Below are positions 41,701-53,334 of a stretch of 64,000 nt of DNA, piece by piece. Source of the stretch: Bugula neritina (lineage: Eukaryota; Animalia; Bryozoa). Each line of letters starts with the position of its first letter. The first letter of the stretch is position 1. Below the pieces are notes generated by a model. That model worked only from the letters and a program-made list of their open reading frames with translations, did not search any database and had not been told where the DNA came from. The position numbers and the translations under genes are program-made. Location of the stretch: positions 20,257,700 through 20,321,699 of the forward strand of contig OZ037768.1 in assembly GCA_964035545.1 (NCBI GenBank). Direction: 5' to 3'.

Positions 41701-44700
41701 ACTGTAGGAGGTGTGTCTGAACTGTGTGATAGAAATAAGGAAAATGAAGAAAAACAAGCTAATTATATGCAACCTGTGCAATGAAAGGAGAGAGGTAAGA
41801 ACTCGTATACTGTTGGTGCATTTTCTCATTCATATCAGTACTATATCACAATATAAAATGTAAATGTGGGAGGTATGTGTAGAATGTAGATAAGTATGAA
41901 AAGTACACATATGAAGACGTGTCTATCAAACTTTAACATTTCTAGCGTTTAAGTACAGCAGTGAAATTTATTAATTAAAATATAATAATTTAATATTCAT
42001 TGATCATTTAAGCAACACAATAATTTTTGCAACAGTCTGCATGGAGGTATCAATTTTGATGCATTAATTTTTTTATTCTGTTGCATTTTCAAAATGCAGA
42101 GTTTTATATGAAATCATGCACTTATTTAAACTGCTAATGGAACTTGTTCAGTTCTCAACGCGACCTCTTCTCTCAGCACGACCTCTTCTCACAACACGAC
42201 CTCTTCTCTTATATTTCAGTTGTGGAAAAAGTCGTCTGCGTGGTATTTTGGAGATATTCCTTTTTGTATTGAGAACACGAGTTCTCCTTTTTCGTCTCAA
42301 ACGGGGCCCATCTCAGACCCCCTTCCCAGCTCTCAGCCCTTAGATATTCCAGGCCACGAGCTATCCTCAGATGCTGATGGCTCGTGTCAAGGTCAACAGA
42401 GAGATATAAAGATTGTGAGGTGTAAGCCAGGTGAGTTTGTAGTGTGTACCTTTCAGTACAGGTAGTTTCTCTTATGTACGTCTTTCACAGTTAAGTTGAA
42501 GCTTATTGGTATAGTGTACAGTTATACCTTAGTGAAAAGCTTTTTGAAGAAACACTGTGCAATATATAACAAATACACTATAAAGAAATATGCCTTTTTA
42601 GATTCATCCATGTTCTCTGCAATACAATTAACTCTATGTTGAGTCAATGCAGAAATTTTAAGTTTTGAAAAAGTATAAATAAGCACCTTGAAACTTTTAT
42701 TACTCAGAAAAGCACATTTTTGTTAGCAGAAGTTGGAATATTATATTCTTATTGGGATGTGTTATATTTATGGTGGAAATCTTTGACTTGCTCTGTTTCG
42801 TGTCGAAGTTATTTTCTCCTGCTTCAAAGATAAATGCCAGCTGAATGTACTGTATTATTAGAAGCTTTCATTCTGCATTCAATGGTTATTTCTGGTTGCA
42901 GATTCGGCAGAACACGACTCCGATTCAGACACAGATGCCGAGAGTATCCACAGCACAGGCACTGCGAGTTACAGCGGCTCTTTGCGGAGGTTCAAAAGAG
43001 GTGGGGTTTACTCACTCTTGCCTAGTGATGTAACGCTTTTACTGGAATATGTAAATAGACTTTGGTTAAGTTGTGAGGGAGTGTAGTGTTCAAGTGTAGA
43101 ATTTGTGTTGGTGTTGCTGTGGTGTAGGTAGTGTGGTATAAGTAGTGTGGTATAGGTAGTGTGGTATAGGTAGTGTGGTATAGGTAGTGTGGTATAGGTA
43201 GTGTGGTATAGGTAGTGTGGTATAGGTAGTGTGGTATAGGTAGTGTGGTATAGTGTGGTATAGGTAGTGTGGTATAGGTATTGTGGTATAGGTAGTGTGG
43301 TATAGGTATTGTGGTATAAGTAGTGTGGTATAGGTAGTGTGGTATAAGTAGTGTGGTATAGGTAGTGTGGTACAGGTATTGCATCCCTGAAATCTACTCT
43401 GTTTGTCTTATGTATATATGCAGTGTTTGTACTTTGTGCCTTCCATGCAGCTCATACCTGTATATCTTGTGTCCTTTAAGTCTTATGGTGCTGCCTTGTT
43501 TCTATCTGTCTATTATATATATAGTTTAATTGTTAATAACAAGATGCTCTTCTGCTAATACCTCAGGTGACAGTGAAGATATGCTAGTACACAGAATAAT
43601 ATTATTAAATTCTCTCAAAAGTTCTTGAAAATTTTACAGTGGTGTCATTCAAAAACATTCTGCTCAAATTGTATGAATAAAAAGTCATTGCTTGATTTCT
43701 ACCATTGAAAAACTTTGGAAAAATTATATTTAAAATGTTTTTATCTGATTCCATACTTAGAGATGTTAGTATTGGCTATTCTTGTTCGTAGTCGAGGCAG
43801 ATACAGTGAGTTTAGATTCCCAGCCAATCAAAGACAAGAGTGTGGACAGTTTCGCCGCCCCAACCAATGAGGAGTCTGCAACTGAGAGTCTGCAGGACCT
43901 GAGGCTAATGTCCTTTCAACCAGAAGGCAGCAGTGGTTAGTAGTGATTCCACTTACCACATTTTATATTTATCTCGGCATTCATCACTGCATGTAAATTG
44001 TTACCATTAGTTGTATGGAATTTAAACATACATACATATAATATATTTAAAGAATAGTGAATTATGAGAGTGCAGAAAATGAAAGGAAGTTTTATAAACA
44101 TAATTCTTTATGAAATGCCTAGTGCTGAATGATATTTATATACATTATATTCAGTTTGAGGTACTTTCAAAATGTCTTTGGAAAGTTTTACTAATGCACT
44201 GCTGCTACCATCAGGCCACAGTAGTCCTGCACTAAATAAACGCCGAGGAGTTGTGTCCTTTCACCCCGACACGGTGTCTCAGAAGAGTGATGGTTTTGAG
44301 ATGACGGTGAGAAGCAATCCATTTAATGAGGGAATTCCCAGATGTATTTCCATTCCAAACGCTGATCTCAAAGACATAGAGTATTACGAGGAAGTGGATA
44401 CGGATTGTAAGTTGAGTGTCAGAGAAAGTAGTTCAAGTTTCATATTCACTTGTTAATCGTGTGCTATATGCTCTGCAATAGATGTTATAATGTGTTATAC
44501 GGTAAATCATGAATTATATTCAAGGAAAGTCTCATATTACCCCACGCACACACACACACACACACACAACATGCACTCACAGCACACACTCACACACAAA
44601 CACGCACACACAAACACGCACGCACAAACACGCAACATGCACAAACACGCAACATGCACTCACAGCACACACTCACACATACACACACACGAACACACGC

Positions 44701-47700
44701 ACACACACGAACACACACACTGTAGCTCCTTGTAGCTGCCTCATGTTGTTCATATATGTATTGTAGCTCCCTACGAAGGCCTCTTATTATTCATGTATAT
44801 TGCAGCTCCCTACGGCAGCCTCATATTCACTTTGTTCTATCAAGAGCTTGAAGAGTTGCTGGAGATTGAAGTACTAGGAGCTCAGGTAGAGTTATATTAC
44901 ACTCTAGTCATAGTTTAATACAACAAATTAGCCATTCTCTAGATTTCCCAGAATGCAACTGCTAGTTTGTTTTTATTATTATTTTCTGATACAAGACAGA
45001 ACTTTTTTGTCTGGTCGATCCTTTATTTGAAGAGCTTATGAATTGTAATCATTTAACTGACTGTTAAACATTTGATGCAAAGTTAATACACTATTCACTA
45101 CTTATATGCCTCTGCCTTGTCTCATGCTATGGTTTTGACTACAACATCTCATTTTTTCTCTTTTTCATTTGTTTTACCTGCTTTTCTCTGGAACACACTA
45201 GACATTGGAATAGGCGTTTTGGTTTGTATGTTTCTAGACAAAGTTGCTGTCAACTTGTGTGGCCTGTGTATAACTAGCTAGGCTATAGTGCATTGAGCTT
45301 TGTTGTCATCTCTGTATGTGTAATGCTTTTCTAAATACAATGTTAATGAAATAAAACAAACATTGTGTATTTACTGCTAGCAGAAACTTGCGTCTTAGCA
45401 ATGCAAGCCTACTTATGAGATAATCTTACAAGGATCTTGTGTAACAGGTACATTGAGTGTCATACACTTTATTTTTGGTCATTGCTAAGGAAATTCATAT
45501 TTGTGACCAACTAGTATTTGTGCAACAGAGCCCCAGGTCTACCAGATAAGGTTTCACACATACTGTAGGTAGTTTGCTTCCTATTTTGTAGCATTTACCT
45601 GACATTGGATCTGCGTGCAACCCTTACGTATCCGTCAACCTTGCACCAAGTATTGGCAATGTAAGTGACTCATGTACCTTATGAGTACCCCATGCACTTT
45701 ATCAAATTCTGGATATTTCAACTCACAAATTCTATACGAACAGTGTTCATATGATATAAACTATCAACTTTTTACAAATTTTTGAAAAAATTCAAAACTT
45801 TGTTTATGAGGGTTTGTGTTGTTTGAAACTCGTTGGATTATCTTACAGTCACGCACACAGAGAACGCACGCAGAAACTAACACATTCACACCAAAATGGA
45901 AGCAAAAGATTTCGTATTTCGCACTTCCTGTGGATGAACTTCTCTTCAAATCTCTAGTGTAAGTGATGAGGTACTCTATGACAAATCTAACTAACCTGGG
46001 CGTGTAGTCTATACATTGACACCGTAATGACTGTATCGGTTTGTGTTTGTGTCTGGTTGCAAGATATGCTTTAACTACTAGCCAACTTGGCAACAGGTTT
46101 TCGAGTTTATTAACTGTCAAATCGTACCCTATAAAATGGGAAACATTAGAAATTGTATAAATAAGTAGTCACAATATAAATCAAAATTCAGAGGAACACT
46201 ATGAATATTACAGAACCAAAAAAATTGACATGAACTATTATAATTCTAATAAACTTACAATATTGATGCGTGGATAAAAATCTTAGCCATCACAATGCCG
46301 AAACCGATAGTTTATTCATACAAAGAGTGTAAATATGGCGGTTTGATCATGATACACTGACTCATGCAGTACAGTGAATGAACTAGCTCTGCCAGCTAAT
46401 AGTAGCTTTGGTGAAAGCTTTTGAAGCTTGAAAGCTTTAATGATTGGCTGCCTGCCAATACTTCTGGGTGGCATACCAATACATCGGTGGGGTCGAATTG
46501 TTTGGCAGATACTATTCTGACAAATATTGATAAATTATGTAAATCAAAACAGACAAAACAAACAAAACAAAATAGGATCAGTCACAGACCATGAAATTCT
46601 TGCACCAATCCGCTGATCCCTCCGCGCACCAGCCCGTCCCCCGGAAAACGGATGAATGCGGACCCCCTCCAGCGACACGAGCGTACACGCGGCCAAGACG
46701 GTAGATCAGTCATTTATGGGTTCACCTCAGTTAATAAAGCCAACTTATGCACGCTGCGGGTTATGATAGTGTCTTTACAGCCTACATAGTCCCTCAGTTT
46801 TCCTGCTACCTTATAGTTTGGTCTGCCGTAAATCTGTTTTTCTCCTCTCACAATATACGGACCAAAAAGATCTATCATTACATTGTTGAATGGCGGTCCG
46901 ATCGTTAGTCGTTCTGTAGGTAGACTTCCCATCAGTTGATCAGTAAAGCGAGGTTGTTTGAGTCGACACATTTGGCATGATGTTACAATGCCCCTAGCAA
47001 CTTTAGATCCCTGCATAGTCCAAAACTCTTCTCGGAATCTTGCGAGTGTTGCATCTCGGCCACGGTGATAGCTGTCTGTATGTGCCTGCCGCATTGCCAA
47101 GTAGGTAAAGTAGTGAGTGGTGGGAAGGATTGATTGCGTGTGCGTTTTAATCGCTGTCATGGGGTTATGCCTTAGGAGTCTACTGCCTACTATCCATACT
47201 CCACTCTCTGTCTTAATGGGGTGAAGTCTTGTGTATTTCCCTTTAATCTTGTTCAACTCAGAATCTATAGTGCGTTGTACCTGCTTCAGTAAGTAGAGTT
47301 TGGTCTGCCGTAGATCTGTCACGGTGACGAGATCAGGTTGGATTCCCTTAAAACTTTTGTACTTGAAGACGTTGCGAACTCGAGCTATTGTCCATGTTAG
47401 ACTCTTAAGGCTGCTGAAATTTTCATATTTAATAAATGATTGGACTTCTGTTGATGCAGTGACGGTGTAAACTAATTTCTTCTCTCCAAAGACAAGCTCA
47501 TTCGAGTCAGATGGCGATTTTATATCCCATTGATCCTCAGGCAGATAGAGAAAATTTGGGCCTCTCCACCATTCACTCGCAGGTCCAATGTCATTGACAG
47601 GCTTCCCTCTTGTAAGCCAATCTGCTGTGTTTTCCTTGCCACTTACCCAGTGCCAGCCGCTCATATCTCCATTGGTTGCTCCCTGAATTTCTCCAACACG

Positions 47701-50700
47701 TACACCCTCGTAAACATGAAACCTTGTTGACTTCTTTTGGAGCATCTTGAGCACTGTTTCAGAATCTATAAGCTGATAAACTTTCTCAAACTCATGGCGC
47801 ATTTCAGTCTCGATAACTCGCCTGCCTCTCTTAGACAATACGGCCGCATTGAGTTCTAGTTGAGGAATCTTGAGTTGTTGTTTCATGGGTGCTATACGAC
47901 ATTTAGCAGTAGCTTTGTTTACCCCTTTAGCGGCCACTTTAGATCCTGCCCTCTCATTGTCCAAGACAGGCGTGGATTGTGTGATAGAGGTACTGCTAGT
48001 AAATTCATACTTTCTTTTAATCTCTATAGACATGGTCGTAGAGTCATTGATTTCTAAAGATTTGTTCAACTGTCCAGAACCGATTTGTTCTGCAGACTCA
48101 GTGACTGGGTCTCCCGGGCTCTGTAGCGGGTCGGAGTCATCGGCTAACTCAATCGTACAACATTCAGTGGCTATAGTATGTGATTCACCACAATCTATAA
48201 TAGTCTGAGGTCTTGAAAATGACTTTGTAAACTGACTGGGAGATGCGTCGGGACTATTGACACTGTAGGCTGGCGAAGAAACTGTAGACAAGTCCAAATC
48301 GCAACTGTTAAGCGTGTCATTGTGAATTCTTTGAGAAAATTCGACTTCCTCTAACTTCTCGTGCATCATGGTAGCCTGTACATGGAAAGATGAGGATGGA
48401 AGTGTAGAAAAGTTGCTAAGGGCCGGGTGTGATCCCTGAACACACAGTCCAAAGGGTCCGGAATACACATAGAGGTGCGGTCCTGCTTGATCAACTTGGT
48501 GTTTTGGATGCAATCCAAGAAGATCGTTACCAATTAGCAGGTCGATAGGTCCCGTCTTCTTCAATAGCTTGCTAGTGTCTATTTTTGGGAAGAGAGATCC
48601 GAGGATGTTTGCATCAAGTGGCCTGTTGATAGCCCCTGTGAGTTTCCGAAGGCTGTAAGCTAAAATCGCAAAGGTCCTTCCCTTTGGAGTTTGTAACTTT
48701 ACTTCATAAATAGTAGAAGTTTCGCTAACTTCATGTTCACCAAGTGTGTTCATTTCCAAATTCACCTTATCTATTTGTCGCGCACCCCACGCTTTAGCCG
48801 CTCTCTCCGATATGAATGAAGCATTGGATCCGCCGTCAAAGAATATAATAGCTGTATGAGATGTACCCACTACTTGGGCCTGCTGAATGGCAAATACTGT
48901 AGCATTTCCTGGATGATTGTGCGCTCCATGATTGGGAGACACACGTACCGTGGTGCTAACAGCAGACGCTTCAGAATTCTCGTTACTCTTGTGCTTAATT
49001 TGATCAGCTTTTACTTTATTCTTGTTGGTATTACAATTGGTATGTGTATTAGTTTCAGCTGATTTGATACACAATAATACATGGTGGGTTGTTTTATCAC
49101 AGACTGGACAAGGGGTTCGGAAATTTGGACAGCATTTAGGCTCATGAGTGCTCAAGCACCTAACACATAGAGAATTAGTTTTTATTAACTTGTATCTTTC
49201 ATCTACAGACAACGCCAAGAAATTTCTGCACTCAACAAGACAATGACGCTCACTGCGATGAATAAAACAGTAATTCTTACTATCAATGATTTTGCTATTA
49301 TTAGTAGGCCTGTTACTACTAGACTTTGGGCCACTACTTTCAGTGTGGAACCCTTTCACCTTCTGTTTATGCATACTGGAGGACTGCGGGTTTACAGTTT
49401 CTATACGTCTGAGGGCTATCTGCCGTTCCTGCTCTAGAAACCTCATGAGGTGTGGGAATGGCTTGATTCTCTCCTCGTGAGTAAGTATGTGAAAGTGTCT
49501 ATCCCAGTCCCGTCTAATGCTTGTAGGTAATAGGTTTGCAAGAGTATCGACTTGTGGCAGCGTAACAGTTTGCAAAAGTCCCACTTCACCGAGTTGGCTG
49601 TACGAACTTTCCACTGCATTGGCCATTTTGACGAGTTCTCGTGCATTTCCTTCCCTTACTGGCTTTAGTTCTTGTAGATTGTTGAAGACTGCTTGCACAC
49701 TCATGCTAGGATCATTGTAGACCTCTTCTAATCTACACATCATTCTCTCGTAAGCTTGAGGCTGAGTTGCGAAGATTGGCTGAACCATCTCCAGAGCTTC
49801 GCCTGTGAGAAATTTTTTTAATTCGCAAGCCCTATCGACATCATCGTAAAACATAGTGGCATATCTTAGCCATACTGACCTAAATTCCAGCCAATGGTAT
49901 CTGGTGCCGTTAAATGGCTTGGGTTGTGAATGAGTTTTATGTATAGATGAATTGAAGTTATTTCCACCTGTAAGTCTAGAGTCATAACTTATTTGACTAG
50001 TTCCATTAGGGTAGCTATCATATGCATCGACAACCGAGGAAGTTGCGCCGCGAATGAAAGATTCAGAATGAGCTGCACGATCAGGACTACCATGTAGATC
50101 ACGTACTGAGAATGTAGAAGAACGAACATCTCTGACATTGGTACTTGCTATGACACCTGGATTTGATGCCAAAGCTTCACCGGATGTGTGATCTTCCCGT
50201 AGTACCTGTCTATCACTACCACTTGCTGTGATACCTGGATTTGGTGCAAGAGTAGCCTCATGTGTGCTAGGCTGTGATCTAGGAGGAAACAACCGACTCG
50301 ACGCGACCATAGTCGGTGCATGACTCGCGCCGTCTGAAGGTGACCCCCCACCCACACCGCTCTCCGCGAGACCGGACCGGACCACGAACGAATCAGATTC
50401 ACGGTGTTCGAAATTCATGCTCTGTGACTGAGCCCTTGACATAAGAGTAAACTTAGACATACAATAATCTAAAGATAAAATAACTTCATCTAGTTTTAAT
50501 AATAAATCAGAAAAACCTATGGTATCTGCCAAACTTTCTGAAAGAGCTACACATTTCTTATGATGTTCAGTGATAAGAGTATTGTCAGTACAATCAGCAA
50601 CTAATCCATTGGCTTTCTTAATTGCTAAAATAAGGCTGTGCTTGATTTTATAGAATTTGCTATGCCAAGTATTACAGTCAGAAATAGCTTTGTCATAACT

Positions 50701-53334
50701 AGCCTTTACAGCTTGATAGTACTCTACTGGACTCATCTTATTAACATAAGCAATGTCTTCCATAGACTCATCTGATGAAACGTATTCCAAAAAGTCATAA
50801 TGGATAGTTAGAAACTCTTGATATGTAGATTCAAGCTGAGATCGCAGGCATTCCACTTGTGTAGAGTTGCTACTAGAGATTGCTGATTCTATGAGATTAG
50901 TTAGCATTGTTACCTTAGACCTCAGAGTAGTACGTTGCTTCTTGAGATTAACTATGTCCTGTCGGTCCATGTCAGCCTCATCAATATTGGTACTGTATCG
51001 GTTTGTGTTTGTGTCTGGTTGCAAGATATGCTTTAACTACTAGCCAACTTGGCAACAGGTTTTCGAGTTTATTAACTGTCAAATCGTACCCTATAAAATG
51101 GGAAACATTAGAAATTGTATAAATAAGTAGTCACAATATAAATCAAAATTCAGAGGAACACTATGAATATTACAGAACCAAAAAAATTGACATGAACTAT
51201 TATAATTCTAATAAACTTACAATATTGATGCGTGGATAAAAATCTTAGCCATCACAATGCCGAAACCGATAGTTTATTCATACAAAGAGTGTAAATATGG
51301 CGGTTTGATCATGATACACTGACTCATGCAGTACAGTGAATGAACTAGCTCTGCCAGCTAATAGTAGCTTTGGTGAAAGCTTTTGAAGCTTGAAAGCTTT
51401 AATGATTGGCTGCCTGCCAATACTTCTGGGTGGCATACCAATACAATGACCAATACGTGTTGTTTTGTGGGATATATCTAATAGTCTGAGTAGTGAGTTT
51501 TATAGCTGGGATATATCTATTAGTTTGGGTTTTATAGGTGATGCGCCCTAAAATAATGCAAGAATGTATCATAATTTTACATGCTAATTTTAGTTACTGG
51601 TTATTTTCCCTGCAGATTCACAGTTCTCTCGGAGAGGATGTTGGGTTCTGATGATGTCATAGCAGGATATAGAATGGAGTTGAGACAACTCCAGTCGTAT
51701 GAACTGACGCACTTTCATGTCTACATGGAGCAGAGTGCTACTGTGTGTACTTCACCATCACTTATATAAATATATGTTGTAGTAATAGTAATATATGTTT
51801 ATATTATAGTGATGACTTCTAACCTTTCTGGTTATAATTTACAGCTGACAACAGACGAAGTGGCTGGAGAGGACAATGGGAAGATTCAGCTTTCTATTCA
51901 GTATGACTCGGCGTCCACTCTGCTGTATATAAAGGTGGTACGATGTGCTGCCCTTCATATACCTGGCATAGGCAGAGTTGCTGACCCTTATGTTAAACTG
52001 TACGTCTCATTGGTTATATAACTACTGTGTTAGAGCTCATTGGTTAGATAACTACTGTATTAGAGCTCATTGGTTACATAACTACTGTGTTAGAGCTCAT
52101 TGGTTAGATAACTACTGTATTAGAGCTCATTGGTTACATAACTACTGTGTTAGAGCTCATTGGTTAAATAACTGCTGTGTTAGAGCTCATTGGTTACATA
52201 ACTGCTGTGTTAGAGCTCATTGGTTATATAACTACTGTGTTAGAGCTCATTGGTTAGATAACTACTGTGTTAGAGCTCATTGGTTACATAACTGATGTGT
52301 TAGAGCTCATTGGTTACATAACTGATGTGTTAGAGCTCATTGGTTACATAACTGTTGTGTTAGAGTTCATTGCTTTTTACTGAACTTTATCCTGTTAATA
52401 GAATTGAGAACAAACACAAATTTAACAGTCAAATTGTAAGCAGATGTCTTTTCCAAAATCTCATTTCAAAAATGTTTCTTTAAGCTGTGCAATTATTTAT
52501 TTTCATTTGTATGATTTTCACCTCTCATGACACAATTTTAAACTTCAAATGCTCCTAAATCTTATCAAATATCTTAAAGCCTGAGATAGAAATTTAGAGT
52601 TGCTAAGAGTTGCTTTTGTACTAATTGACTTTTTTCCTTCATCAGGTAGTTTCATGCATAGATAACTTGTATACTGTTCAGAAAAATTGCTAGTAAGGAA
52701 AATCTGTTCCAAACTTACATCATTGAGAAAGACTTTCAACAGTTTCAGATGTTTTGATTATCAACCATCTTTTTATTTACTTTTCAGATATCTGTTACCA
52801 GACAGTTCCAAGTCTAGCAAAAAGAAAACGCTTGTTAAGAAAAACACATTGAATCCTGAATTTCACGAAGAGTTTGTCTATAAAGTACCTCTAGACACTT
52901 TACTCAGCATGTCTCTGGAAATATCAGTCTGGGACCACAACATGACCCGGAATGCTTTCCTCGGTGGGTTCACTGGTTATTGCACATGTGCATATATAAA
53001 TACACACTTTTAATTAGCTGCTATTAGAAATACAAGTGCTTGCCCCAAAGATAATCATAAATCTCATTAAAAATATTTTAAAAACTTTAATACTTCTAAG
53101 ATAAAATATTTTGAACAAACATTAAGTTATTAGTTTGCCTTTTTGTCGTTGGATTAGGTGTCAAGCTCAATTTTTCACTCTACCCATATGGTAATATGAT
53201 ATTTTACAGGTGGTGTATATCTCTCAAGTTCTTCAACAGTGGCTTCAGAGAAAATGCAATGGAATCTTATATCTGAGCAGCCCAATAAGTGGCACAACTC
53301 CTGGCATTGTCTCAGAGACATTCTAAACAAGTAG
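38754..53334 (+). CDS. RPH3A: Rabphilin-3A-like Rab effector (Rab-binding domain with Cys8 zinc finger, two C2 domains)
   Basis: Exons 38754-38860, 40663-40818, 41173-41305, 41708-41794, 42220-42430, 42902-43000, 43792-43935, 44215-44406, 44806-44885, 45592-45660, 45849-45958, 51616-51742, 51845-51999, 52788-52963, 53210-53334 (TAG). Motifs: MTD..RWVIPNDRQLSLRARLGTGWSV, LSPEELHHIRSVVHRA..EQQRI, four CxxC pairs, WKKSSAWYF (SGAWFF-like), and C2B DPYVKLYLLPD..KKKTLVKKNTLNPEFHEEF..ISVWDH. Confidence 0.85.
39605..39818 (-). mobile_element. tRNA-derived SINE copy with a degenerate TSD
   Basis: Homologous to 24935-25150. Flanks caatttggggacagtt (39588-39603) and caatttgggagacagtt (39818-39834). Confidence 0.88.
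43118..43380. repeat. 14-bp minisatellite (gtagtgtggtatag)
   Basis: Tandem copies seen directly. Confidence 0.95.
44542..44720. repeat. (CA)n-rich microsatellite
   Basis: Seen directly. Confidence 0.9.
46032..46483 (-). repeat. 3' LTR of the BEL/Pao element
   Basis: Direct repeat of 50994-51445 with TG...CA ends. Confidence 0.95.
46714..50970 (-). CDS. BEL/Pao Gag-protease-(partial RNase H)-(partial integrase) polyprotein; RT and DDE core deleted
   Basis: Single open frame, first ATG at 50970. DUF1759-like Gag (FNGTRYHWLEFRSVW), three Cys-His knuckles, protease FFDGGSNASFI..IDLLIGND, RNase H part AKCRIAP..IPQLELNAAV..IDSETVL..ENTADWLTRG, integrase HHCC and MGSLPTERL..IDLFGP, then directly the C-terminal RSVHKLALL. 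No YVDD-type RT motif. Confidence 0.88.
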   Translation of the reverse strand: MDRQDIVNLKKQRTTLRSKVTMLTNLIESAISSSNSTQVECLRSQLESTYQEFLTIHYDFLEYVSSDESMEDIAYVNKMSPVEYYQAVKASYDKAISDCNTWHSKFYKIKHSLILAIKKANGLVADCTDNTLITEHHKKCVALSESLADTIGFSDLLLKLDEVILSLDYCMSKFTLMSRAQSQSMNFEHRESDSFVVRSGLAESGVGGGSPSDGASHAPTMVASSRLFPPRSQPSTHEATLAPNPGITASGSDRQVLREDHTSGEALASNPGVIASTNVRDVRSSTFSVRDLHGSPDRAAHSESFIRGATSSVVDAYDSYPNGTSQISYDSRLTGGNNFNSSIHKTHSQPKPFNGTRYHWLEFRSVWLRYATMFYDDVDRACELKKFLTGEALEMVQPIFATQPQAYERMMCRLEEVYNDPSMSVQAVFNNLQELKPVREGNARELVKMANAVESSYSQLGEVGLLQTVTLPQVDTLANLLPTSIRRDWDRHFHILTHEERIKPFPHLMRFLEQERQIALRRIETVNPQSSSMHKQKVKGFHTESSGPKSSSNRPTNNSKIIDSKNYCFIHRSERHCLVECRNFLALSVDERYKLIKTNSLCVRCLSTHEPKCCPNFRTPCPVCDKTTHHVLLCIKSAETNTHTNCNTNKNKVKADQIKHKSNENSEASAVSTTVRVSPNHGAHNHPGNATVFAIQQAQVVGTSHTAIIFFDGGSNASFISERAAKAWGARQIDKVNLEMNTLGEHEVSETSTIYEVKLQTPKGRTFAILAYSLRKLTGAINRPLDANILGSLFPKIDTSKLLKKTGPIDLLIGNDLLGLHPKHQVDQAGPHLYVYSGPFGLCVQGSHPALSNFSTLPSSSFHVQATMMHEKLEEVEFSQRIHNDTLNSCDLDLSTVSSPAYSVNSPDASPSQFTKSFSRPQTIIDCGESHTIATECCTIELADDSDPLQSPGDPVTESAEQIGSGQLNKSLEINDSTTMSIEIKRKYEFTSSTSITQSTPVLDNERAGSKVAAKGVNKATAKCRIAPMKQQLKIPQLELNAAVLSKRGRRVIETEMRHEFEKVYQLIDSETVLKMLQKKSTRFHVYEGVRVGEIQGATNGDMSGWHWVSGKENTADWLTRGKPVNDIGPASEWWRGPNFLYLPEDQWDIKSPSDSNELVFGEKKLVYTVTASTEVQSFIKYENFSSLKSLTWTIARVRNVFKYKSFKGIQPDLVTVTDLRQTKLYLLKQVQRTIDSELNKIKGKYTRLHPIKTESGVWIVGSRLLRHNPMTAIKTHTQSILPTTHYFTYLAMRQAHTDSYHRGRDATLARFREEFWTMQGSKVARGIVTSCQMCRLKQPRFTDQLMGSLPTERLTIGPPFNNVMIDLFGPYIVRGEKQIYGRPNYKVAGKLRDYVGCKDTIITRSVHKLALLTEVNP
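50994..51445 (-). repeat. 5' LTR of the BEL/Pao element, containing a GT-AG intron (51220 to 51091) and AATAAA (51073-51068)
   Basis: Direct repeat of 46032-46483. The minus strand has a GTAAGT donor, a CTAAT branch site and a ttttatAG acceptor. Confidence 0.93.
52005..52372. repeat. 30-bp minisatellite (gagctcattggttacataactactgtgtta)
   Basis: About 12 copies starting 5 nt after the donor at 52000. Confidence 0.96.

Follow-up and report, generated by a model that had tools for sequence, protein, structure and literature searches.

A BEL/Pao retrotransposon of Bugula neritina that probably primes its own reverse transcription with a sequence completed by splicing

A complete BEL/Pao long terminal repeat (LTR) retrotransposon occupies positions 46032-51445 on the minus strand of a 64-kb stretch of the Bugula neritina genome (contig OZ037768.1; this whole stretch is called the window below), and its LTR contains a segment with the features of a spliceosomal intron. 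As read from the DNA, the junction that would be formed by removal of this intron is complementary to the site that abuts the 5' LTR, and this relation is kept through sequence change in many related families. We propose that the element self-primes, its minus-strand primer being completed by splicing of the LTR, and we consider this probable. The parts of the window copy on which the proposal turns are as follows:

50994-51445, minus strand: 5' LTR, 452 nt, starting TGTATTGG and ending CCGATACA (TG..CA)
51221-51230, minus strand: end of LTR exon 1, CATCAATATT, the proposed 5' part of the primer
51091-51220, minus strand: LTR intron of spliceosomal type, 130 nt, AT-rich, with donor GTAAGT at 51220-51215 and acceptor TTTTATAG ending at 51091
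51086-51090, minus strand: start of LTR exon 2, GGTAC, the proposed 3' part of the primer, whose last C pairs with the first post-LTR base
51068-51073, minus strand: AATAAA polyadenylation signal, 13 nt past the proposed primer 3' end, marking the end of the repeat (R) region
50979-50993, minus strand: primer-binding site GTACCAATATTGATG, directly after the LTR terminal CA, with its core at 50982-50993

A first-pass annotation of the window had proposed such a mechanism, and all the sequences and positions on which it relied were found in place on the minus strand. The LTR intron has the sequence features of a U2-type intron, namely GT..AG ends, a consensus donor, a pyrimidine tract (TGTTTCCCATTTTATAG) and a branch-like CTAAT ~22 nt upstream of the intron AG. 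When the two exons are joined in silico the product is the exact reverse complement of the post-LTR 15-mer, whereas the unspliced LTR of the window copy pairs 11 nt; recomputation confirmed the annotation's statement that this shorter pairing does not reach the LTR boundary, and placed its end 4 nt short. Among 3000 shuffles of the LTR, in which boundary-anchored complements were counted whether contiguous or across any GT..AG, one gave a complement of at least 12 nt and none gave 15 nt. The site does not start with TGG, so the annotation was right that it is not a tRNA-CCA primer-binding site. An AATAAA or ATTAAA is present at the position equivalent to that of the window copy in the relatives that were read through (L083, L086, L114, L115/L117, L138 and L139).

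Is the GT..AG segment, which the first-pass annotation took to be an intron, in fact removed from the element's RNA? The 216-Mb genome contains at least 30 copies with internal sequence and ~120 LTRs, which fall into subtypes A, A2, B, B2 and C as defined by the bases preceding CATCAAT. About 24 of these LTRs lack exactly the GT..AG segment, with ..CATCAATATT running uninterrupted into GGTACGATTTG.., compared to ~99 occurrences of the intron-containing donor context. The intron-less junctions are spread over subtypes A, B and C. In four elements both LTRs are without the intron, and no element combines the two states. In type A, the four intron-less copies are scattered among intron-containing ones on the copy tree, which implies at least four separate state changes. 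An intron lost repeatedly, and each time exactly at GT..AG, bears the mark of spliced RNA that was reverse transcribed, and we therefore take the intron to be real and removed in vivo, as the annotation had supposed. The pattern of loss is strong evidence, indirect and drawn from DNA, for splicing of RNA that goes on to be reverse transcribed. In predicted minimum-energy and centroid structures, the natural intron-less leaders pair their first 12-15 nt with the site.

The perfect 15-nt complement that the first-pass annotation described holds for the window copy and a few others; it does not hold family-wide. The site consensus is GTACCAATATTG-N-TG, in which positions 1-12 are constant among ~30 copies except for one compensated copy (L058, below), and position 13 (window 50981) is C in 15, T in 10, A in 4 and G in 1. 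Because position 13 varies, the perfect 15-mer is special to the window copy and a few others, and the rule for the family is 12 nt. Position 13 is the sole four-allele column among the 1896 aligned columns of 24 copies, and it has changed at least nine times on the tree of these copies, including within well-supported sister pairs. Where it is A it creates an out-of-frame ATG in the site, opening a 9-codon upstream open reading frame (ORF) that overlaps the gag start. The hypervariability may arise by non-templated addition at the point where the primer ceases to act as template; alternatively, it may reflect selection against the upstream ATG.

Within the genome the junction and the site change together. 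Copy L058, whose gag is 93.5% identical and whose type-B LTR has a diverged intron, carries CATCAATCTT followed by GTAAGT in the LTR, exon 2 starting with GGTAC, and the site GTACCAAGATTGATG; that is, CAATCTT in the LTR is answered by AAGATTG at the site, a compensatory double change that leaves 15/15 positions matched. A genome pattern search found no second CAATCTT donor near L058, whose 3' LTR is therefore either absent or further diverged. L059 and L078, two type-B copies of which one has the intron and the other lacks it, are likewise matched at all 15/15 positions. The ~11 LTRs of subtype B2 (CATCAATTTT) may be solo LTRs; no B2-type site GTACCAAAATTG with the family flanks is present in this genome.

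The same relation was sought outside the genome. In a word-based homologue search the whole ORF, taken as query, found no more than four matches, all of them distant, and an exhaustive library search gave nearest proteins 38-43% identical over pol. Metagenome contigs, which are the source of most of the relatives, yielded 74 of them on scanning, with identities of 24-73% in the reverse transcriptase (RT) region. For these contigs and one chromosome-level assembly, the post-LTR bases were compared with all the junctions that strong LTR splice sites could form; L085, L087 and L088-L092 have no usable 5' LTR or site and stood outside this comparison. Nine further families from other assemblies, with RT regions 34-66% identical, have different LTR introns whose junctions give 10-14-nt complements to their own sites, as follows (a slash marks the junction):

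L093: intron 167 nt, junction TCAATTTT/GGTAC, site GTACCAAAATTGA, 13 nt matched
L084: intron 154 nt, junction CAAAATCTTGT/TAC, site GTAACAAGATTTTG, 14 nt matched
L103/L110: intron 97 nt, junction CAACAAC/GTTTTAC, site GTAAAACGTTGTTG, 14 nt matched
L138: intron 97 nt, same family as L103, 10 nt matched, then 3 more past one mismatch
L115/L117: intron 220-221 nt, junction TGTTTT/GTCAC, site GTGACAAAACA, 11 nt matched
L113: intron 239 nt, junction CTATT/GGTAC, 10 nt matched
L114: intron 172 nt, junction AATTT/GGTAC, 10 nt matched
L140: intron 180 nt, junction ACA/GATTGGAA, 11 nt matched
L147: intron 316 nt, junction CT/ATTCGAAA, 10 nt matched

In these families the site abuts the LTR end, which is ..CA except in L115/L117; GGTAC or TAC at the acceptor is conserved in relatives, and in all families the complement starts no more than 11 nt upstream of the donor. 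Individual substitutions are also answered: relative to the window element, an A->T change in exon 1 of L093 goes with T->A in its site, and between L138 and L146 a G/A difference in the junction is matched by a C/T difference in the site. In two intron-less relatives the complement is uninterrupted; L083 has CATCAATATTGTCTAC opposite GTAGACAATAGTGA, matched over 10 nt and then 3 more past one mismatch, and L146, a decayed example, has it as a single stretch. Control sites, either reversed or internal to the ORF, gave 2-4 matches compared to 13 for the real sites. The check that the first-pass annotation had suggested, covariation of junction and site, therefore comes out in its favour both in L058 and in nine families with unrelated junctions. 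Among the more distant relatives, the 3' LTRs of L090 and L091 contain strong donor/acceptor pairs, for example ..GCACG/GTAAGT ... TTTTGAACAG/GAT.

Several observations weigh against a spliced primer. Position 13 is mismatched in most type-A copies, and the old, decayed copies L060 and L076 each mismatch at three positions. Outside the genome, L139 and L086 are imperfect or ambiguous, and the L084 site lies 9 nt past the point where its two LTRs cease matching (the end of its 3' LTR looks damaged). The tRNA gene search, which found none, covered the 64-kb window only. If the primer were the RNA 5' end, as in the Tf1 element of Schizosaccharomyces pombe, exon 1 would measure only ~6-11 nt, and exons this short are unusual in splicing. 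Finally, Logan contigs of public runs X1, X2, X4 and X9, whose RNA status is uncertain, were compared with window positions 45950-51550, and no 51221/51090 joint was present among them; these contigs derive from a sibling that is ~95% identical and has a different LTR type, its LTR diverging at 51006, and 51007-51445 are uncovered. One contig of 546 nt spans the 3' LTR, apparently unspliced, and its length fits that of an unspliced LTR. An apparent 120-nt skip in the contig's 3' LTR was considered as a splice and rejected, as it is unaligned, diverged sequence. One Logan contig breaks exactly at the hypervariable position, 50980/50981.

What else could account for the complementarity? The pairing of junction and site could be a selected RNA structure, such as a translation or packaging switch, a dimerisation element or a control of the gag start, with some other RNA serving as primer. 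The site does lie 9-10 nt upstream of the gag ATG at 50970, an A at position 13 does place an out-of-frame upstream ATG within it, the junction-site pairing dominates the predicted leader folds, and the priming step that we propose is itself deduced from sequence. Yet the complement stops, in more than ten families, precisely at the base that follows the LTR terminal CA, the place that a primer 3' end has to occupy if it is to define the LTR boundary, and no alternative tRNA-type site adjoins the LTR; the compensatory change in L058 is, moreover, the expected product of copying a primer into the site. We regard a purely structural role as unlikely.

Classic Tf1-like priming by the unspliced LTR sequence CATCAATATTG, with the intron incidental, would make use of the 11-nt contiguous complement in the window copy, and Tf1 likewise uses 11 nt (PMC5341516). 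This complement, however, stops 4 nt short of the LTR boundary, and it shrinks to only 8 nt in most type-A copies because position 13 mismatches. Among relatives the complement available from exon 1 alone is 2-8 nt except in L084, where it is 11 nt (L138, 3; L113/L114, 5; L115, 6; L103/L110, 7; L093, 8; L140, 3; L147, 2), and only the spliced form gives 10-14 nt that reach the boundary. Priming from the unspliced sequence thus appears very improbable.

We give slightly less credence still to a primer of host origin, be it a tRNA, a tRNA fragment or another small RNA, the match to the LTR being coincidental. By count, the 12-mer has ~45 genomic matches outside element copies compared to 29 expected by chance, but the site differs among families and always tracks the junction of its own LTR, and this covariation argues against a host tRNA primer; the site also lacks a TGG start, and no tRNA gene lies within the window. 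The notion that the intron-less LTRs arose by DNA deletion and that the complementarity is due to chance has nothing specific in its favour and can practically be dismissed, since ~24 LTRs, from three subtypes and several independent lineages, have lost exactly the GT..AG segment, and complements of the observed length are rare in shuffles and at control sites, with 15 nt in no shuffle.

Self-priming by spliced RNA would proceed as follows: The 130-nt spliceosomal intron within the R region of the LTR would be removed, and splicing would join ..CAUCAAUAUU to GGUAC, creating a 12-15-nt stretch able to pair with the bases directly after the 5' LTR. By analogy with Tf1 and Tf2, the element's RNase H would then cut the RNA after ..GGUAC, leaving a 3' end from which minus-strand DNA synthesis would begin at the last LTR base, 50994. 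This would yield a strong-stop DNA of 92 nt, made up of the unique 5' region (U5) and that part of R which lies in exon 2. Its transfer to the 3' R would rely on the ~35 nt that separate the cut from the poly(A) site, and the 3' LTR copy of the RNA would then serve as template for exon 1, the intron and the unique 3' region, U3. Retention of the 3' intron would give intron-containing progeny and its splicing would give intron-less progeny, both of which classes are observed. The intron status of the progeny would thus reflect splicing at the 3' end, and competence for priming would reflect splicing at the 5' end or the supply of spliced RNA in trans. The coexistence of the two kinds of progeny is in line with the suggestion of the first-pass annotation that the intron is regenerated by an unspliced 3' LTR. 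The plus strand would copy the primer and rewrite the binding site in each cycle, keeping the site matched to the LTR; we infer this last step because compensatory changes are seen.

The start of the complement within 11 nt of the donor in all families would suit a transcription start close by and hints at a very short first exon. A broader scheme can be put forward tentatively, as somewhat less than an even bet, in which splicing licenses reverse transcription throughout an animal BEL/Pao clade. Only 5'-spliced RNA would self-prime, unspliced RNA would be left for translation, and retention of the 3' intron would pass the intron on; exon 1 might be a micro-exon of ~6-11 nt, with the capped, spliced 5' end as the primer and position 13 marking the end of the template.

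The remaining features of the window element are these:

46032-46483, minus strand: 3' LTR, 452 nt, offset from the 5' LTR by 4962
46129-46258, minus strand: 3' LTR copy of the intron, with the exon-1 end at 46259-46268, GGTAC at 46124-46128 and AATAAA at 46106-46111
46027-46031 and 51446-51450, no strand assigned: target-site duplication ATGAC, 5 bp, flanking both LTRs
46714-50970, minus strand: single gag-pol ORF, 1418 aa, with its ATG at 50970 and its stop at 46714
46820-46832, minus strand: deletion scar, a 13-nt filler in place of 781 nt (including the integrase core) found in longer copies
46484-46501, minus strand: C-rich tract ACAATTCGACCCCACCGA, abutting the 3' LTR where a polypurine tract is expected

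The two LTRs are 100% identical, and the element belongs to a young, multi-copy family. Its assignment to BEL/Pao, made in the first-pass annotation, is supported by the Pfam domains of the ORF: DUF1759 at aa 371-510, DUF1758 at aa 719-836 (below the cut-off) and Peptidase_A17 at aa 1039-1088. Integrase_H2C2 at aa 1310-1358 is C-terminal to the Pao RT region, which gives the BEL/Pao order of protease, RT, RNase H and integrase, with integrase last. The same Pfam set is found in the nearest relatives, and the Pfam set, the domain order and the TG..CA LTRs with a short target-site duplication are all those of BEL/Pao elements. An exact-protein look-up of the ORF returned no record.

The integrase core is absent from the ORF of the window copy. 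A second retro-copied splice was considered as the origin of this gap and rejected, since the ends of the lost piece are not GT..AG and the 13-nt filler is present; because of those ends the gap is taken to be a deletion. At least two other copies have the same shortened open frame (1440 aa), and the defective form, being common to several copies, therefore seems to have been moved in trans. A C-rich tract (..CCCCACCGA directly before TGTATTGG) is present at the same position in L083, L084, L086, L087, L138 and L146, whereas the more distant relatives L090 and L092 have GGGG followed by TGT before the 3' LTR. The tract may reflect unusual plus-strand priming in the clade.

In the LTR and 5' gag region the copies in the genome share 97-100% identity, compared to only 90-98% in pol at the protein level, and LTR subtypes are shuffled among internal regions; together these suggest frequent recombination or template switching between co-packaged RNAs. 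In copy L036 (G000 C6:8207957) the 5' LTR is rearranged and contains an inserted segment from the internal region, and L057 (C3:14162508) has an insertion of ~68 nt directly after the primer site. Outside the element, the window contains two tandem arrays, at 43048-43437 and 51946-52455, with periods of 14 nt and 30 nt; the second is 500 nt away from the element's 5' LTR.

If the proposed mechanism is correct, self-priming would extend to a third LTR superfamily, BEL/Pao, and it would do so by a new principle, in which the primer is absent from the DNA and is made by the host spliceosome. Two fates of retroelement RNA that are usually treated as alternatives, to be spliced or to serve as genome, would be linked, and the upkeep of introns in these LTRs despite recurring intron-less copies would be explained. 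It would also supply a simple sequence rule for annotating primer sites that tRNA-based tools report as lacking. Splicing could, speculatively, act as a switch for reverse transcription.

To our knowledge, self-priming has been shown experimentally only for the Tf1/Tf2 group, and priming in BEL/Pao elements has hardly been studied. The 2011 survey of BEL/Pao elements does not discuss it, and we found no report in the open-access full-text literature of BEL/Pao self-priming, of a splice-dependent primer or of LTR introns in such a role, in keeping with the first-pass annotation's remark that it knew of no such mechanism for BEL/Pao. Self-priming is established for Tf1/Tf2 and the sushi group (PMC6317226; PMC5341516), and it is predicted for plant Tcn1 chromoviruses and for the TAR lineage of Ty1/copia, including Houba and Osr-1 (PMC6317226). 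In Tf1/Tf2 the element's own reverse transcriptase frees the primer, and the 3' R serves to restore those R bases that lie upstream of the cut (PMC5341516). The window family resembles Tf1/Tf2 in that a stretch of the element's own R region, rather than a tRNA, would pair with the site just after the 5' LTR, and the primers are of similar length (11 nt compared to 10-15 nt). The mark of Tf1-type priming, a site complementary to the element's own R region, is found in the window element over 12-15 nt, and only after removal of the intron. The Tf1 primer is contiguous and consists of the first 11 nt of the transcript, whereas that of the window family is interrupted by an intron in the DNA and would exist only after splicing. 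Tf1 and the sushi group are Ty3/gypsy chromoviruses and the window element is BEL/Pao by its proteins, so it would be Tf1-like in its working and not a member of that lineage.

For the plant Tcn1 and TAR elements, as here, self-priming is deduced from complementarity between LTR and site and from the lack of a tRNA match, but these elements belong to other superfamilies, and no LTR intron or dependence on splicing has been reported for them. Elements primed by half-tRNAs (copia, Ty5 and the plant Osser and Bianca lineages) have sites that match internal parts of host tRNAs (PMC6317226); they share with the window family a non-canonical site without a TGG start, and differ in that the window-family site tracks its own LTR. 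In Tf2 the choice of transcription start decides whether the transcript holds a usable self-primer and hence whether it is reverse transcribed (PMC5341516). The corresponding switch in the window family would be removal of the intron, a regulatory role that is speculation at present. The window family thus very probably represents a new variant of Tf1-type self-priming, in which the primer would be made by splicing.

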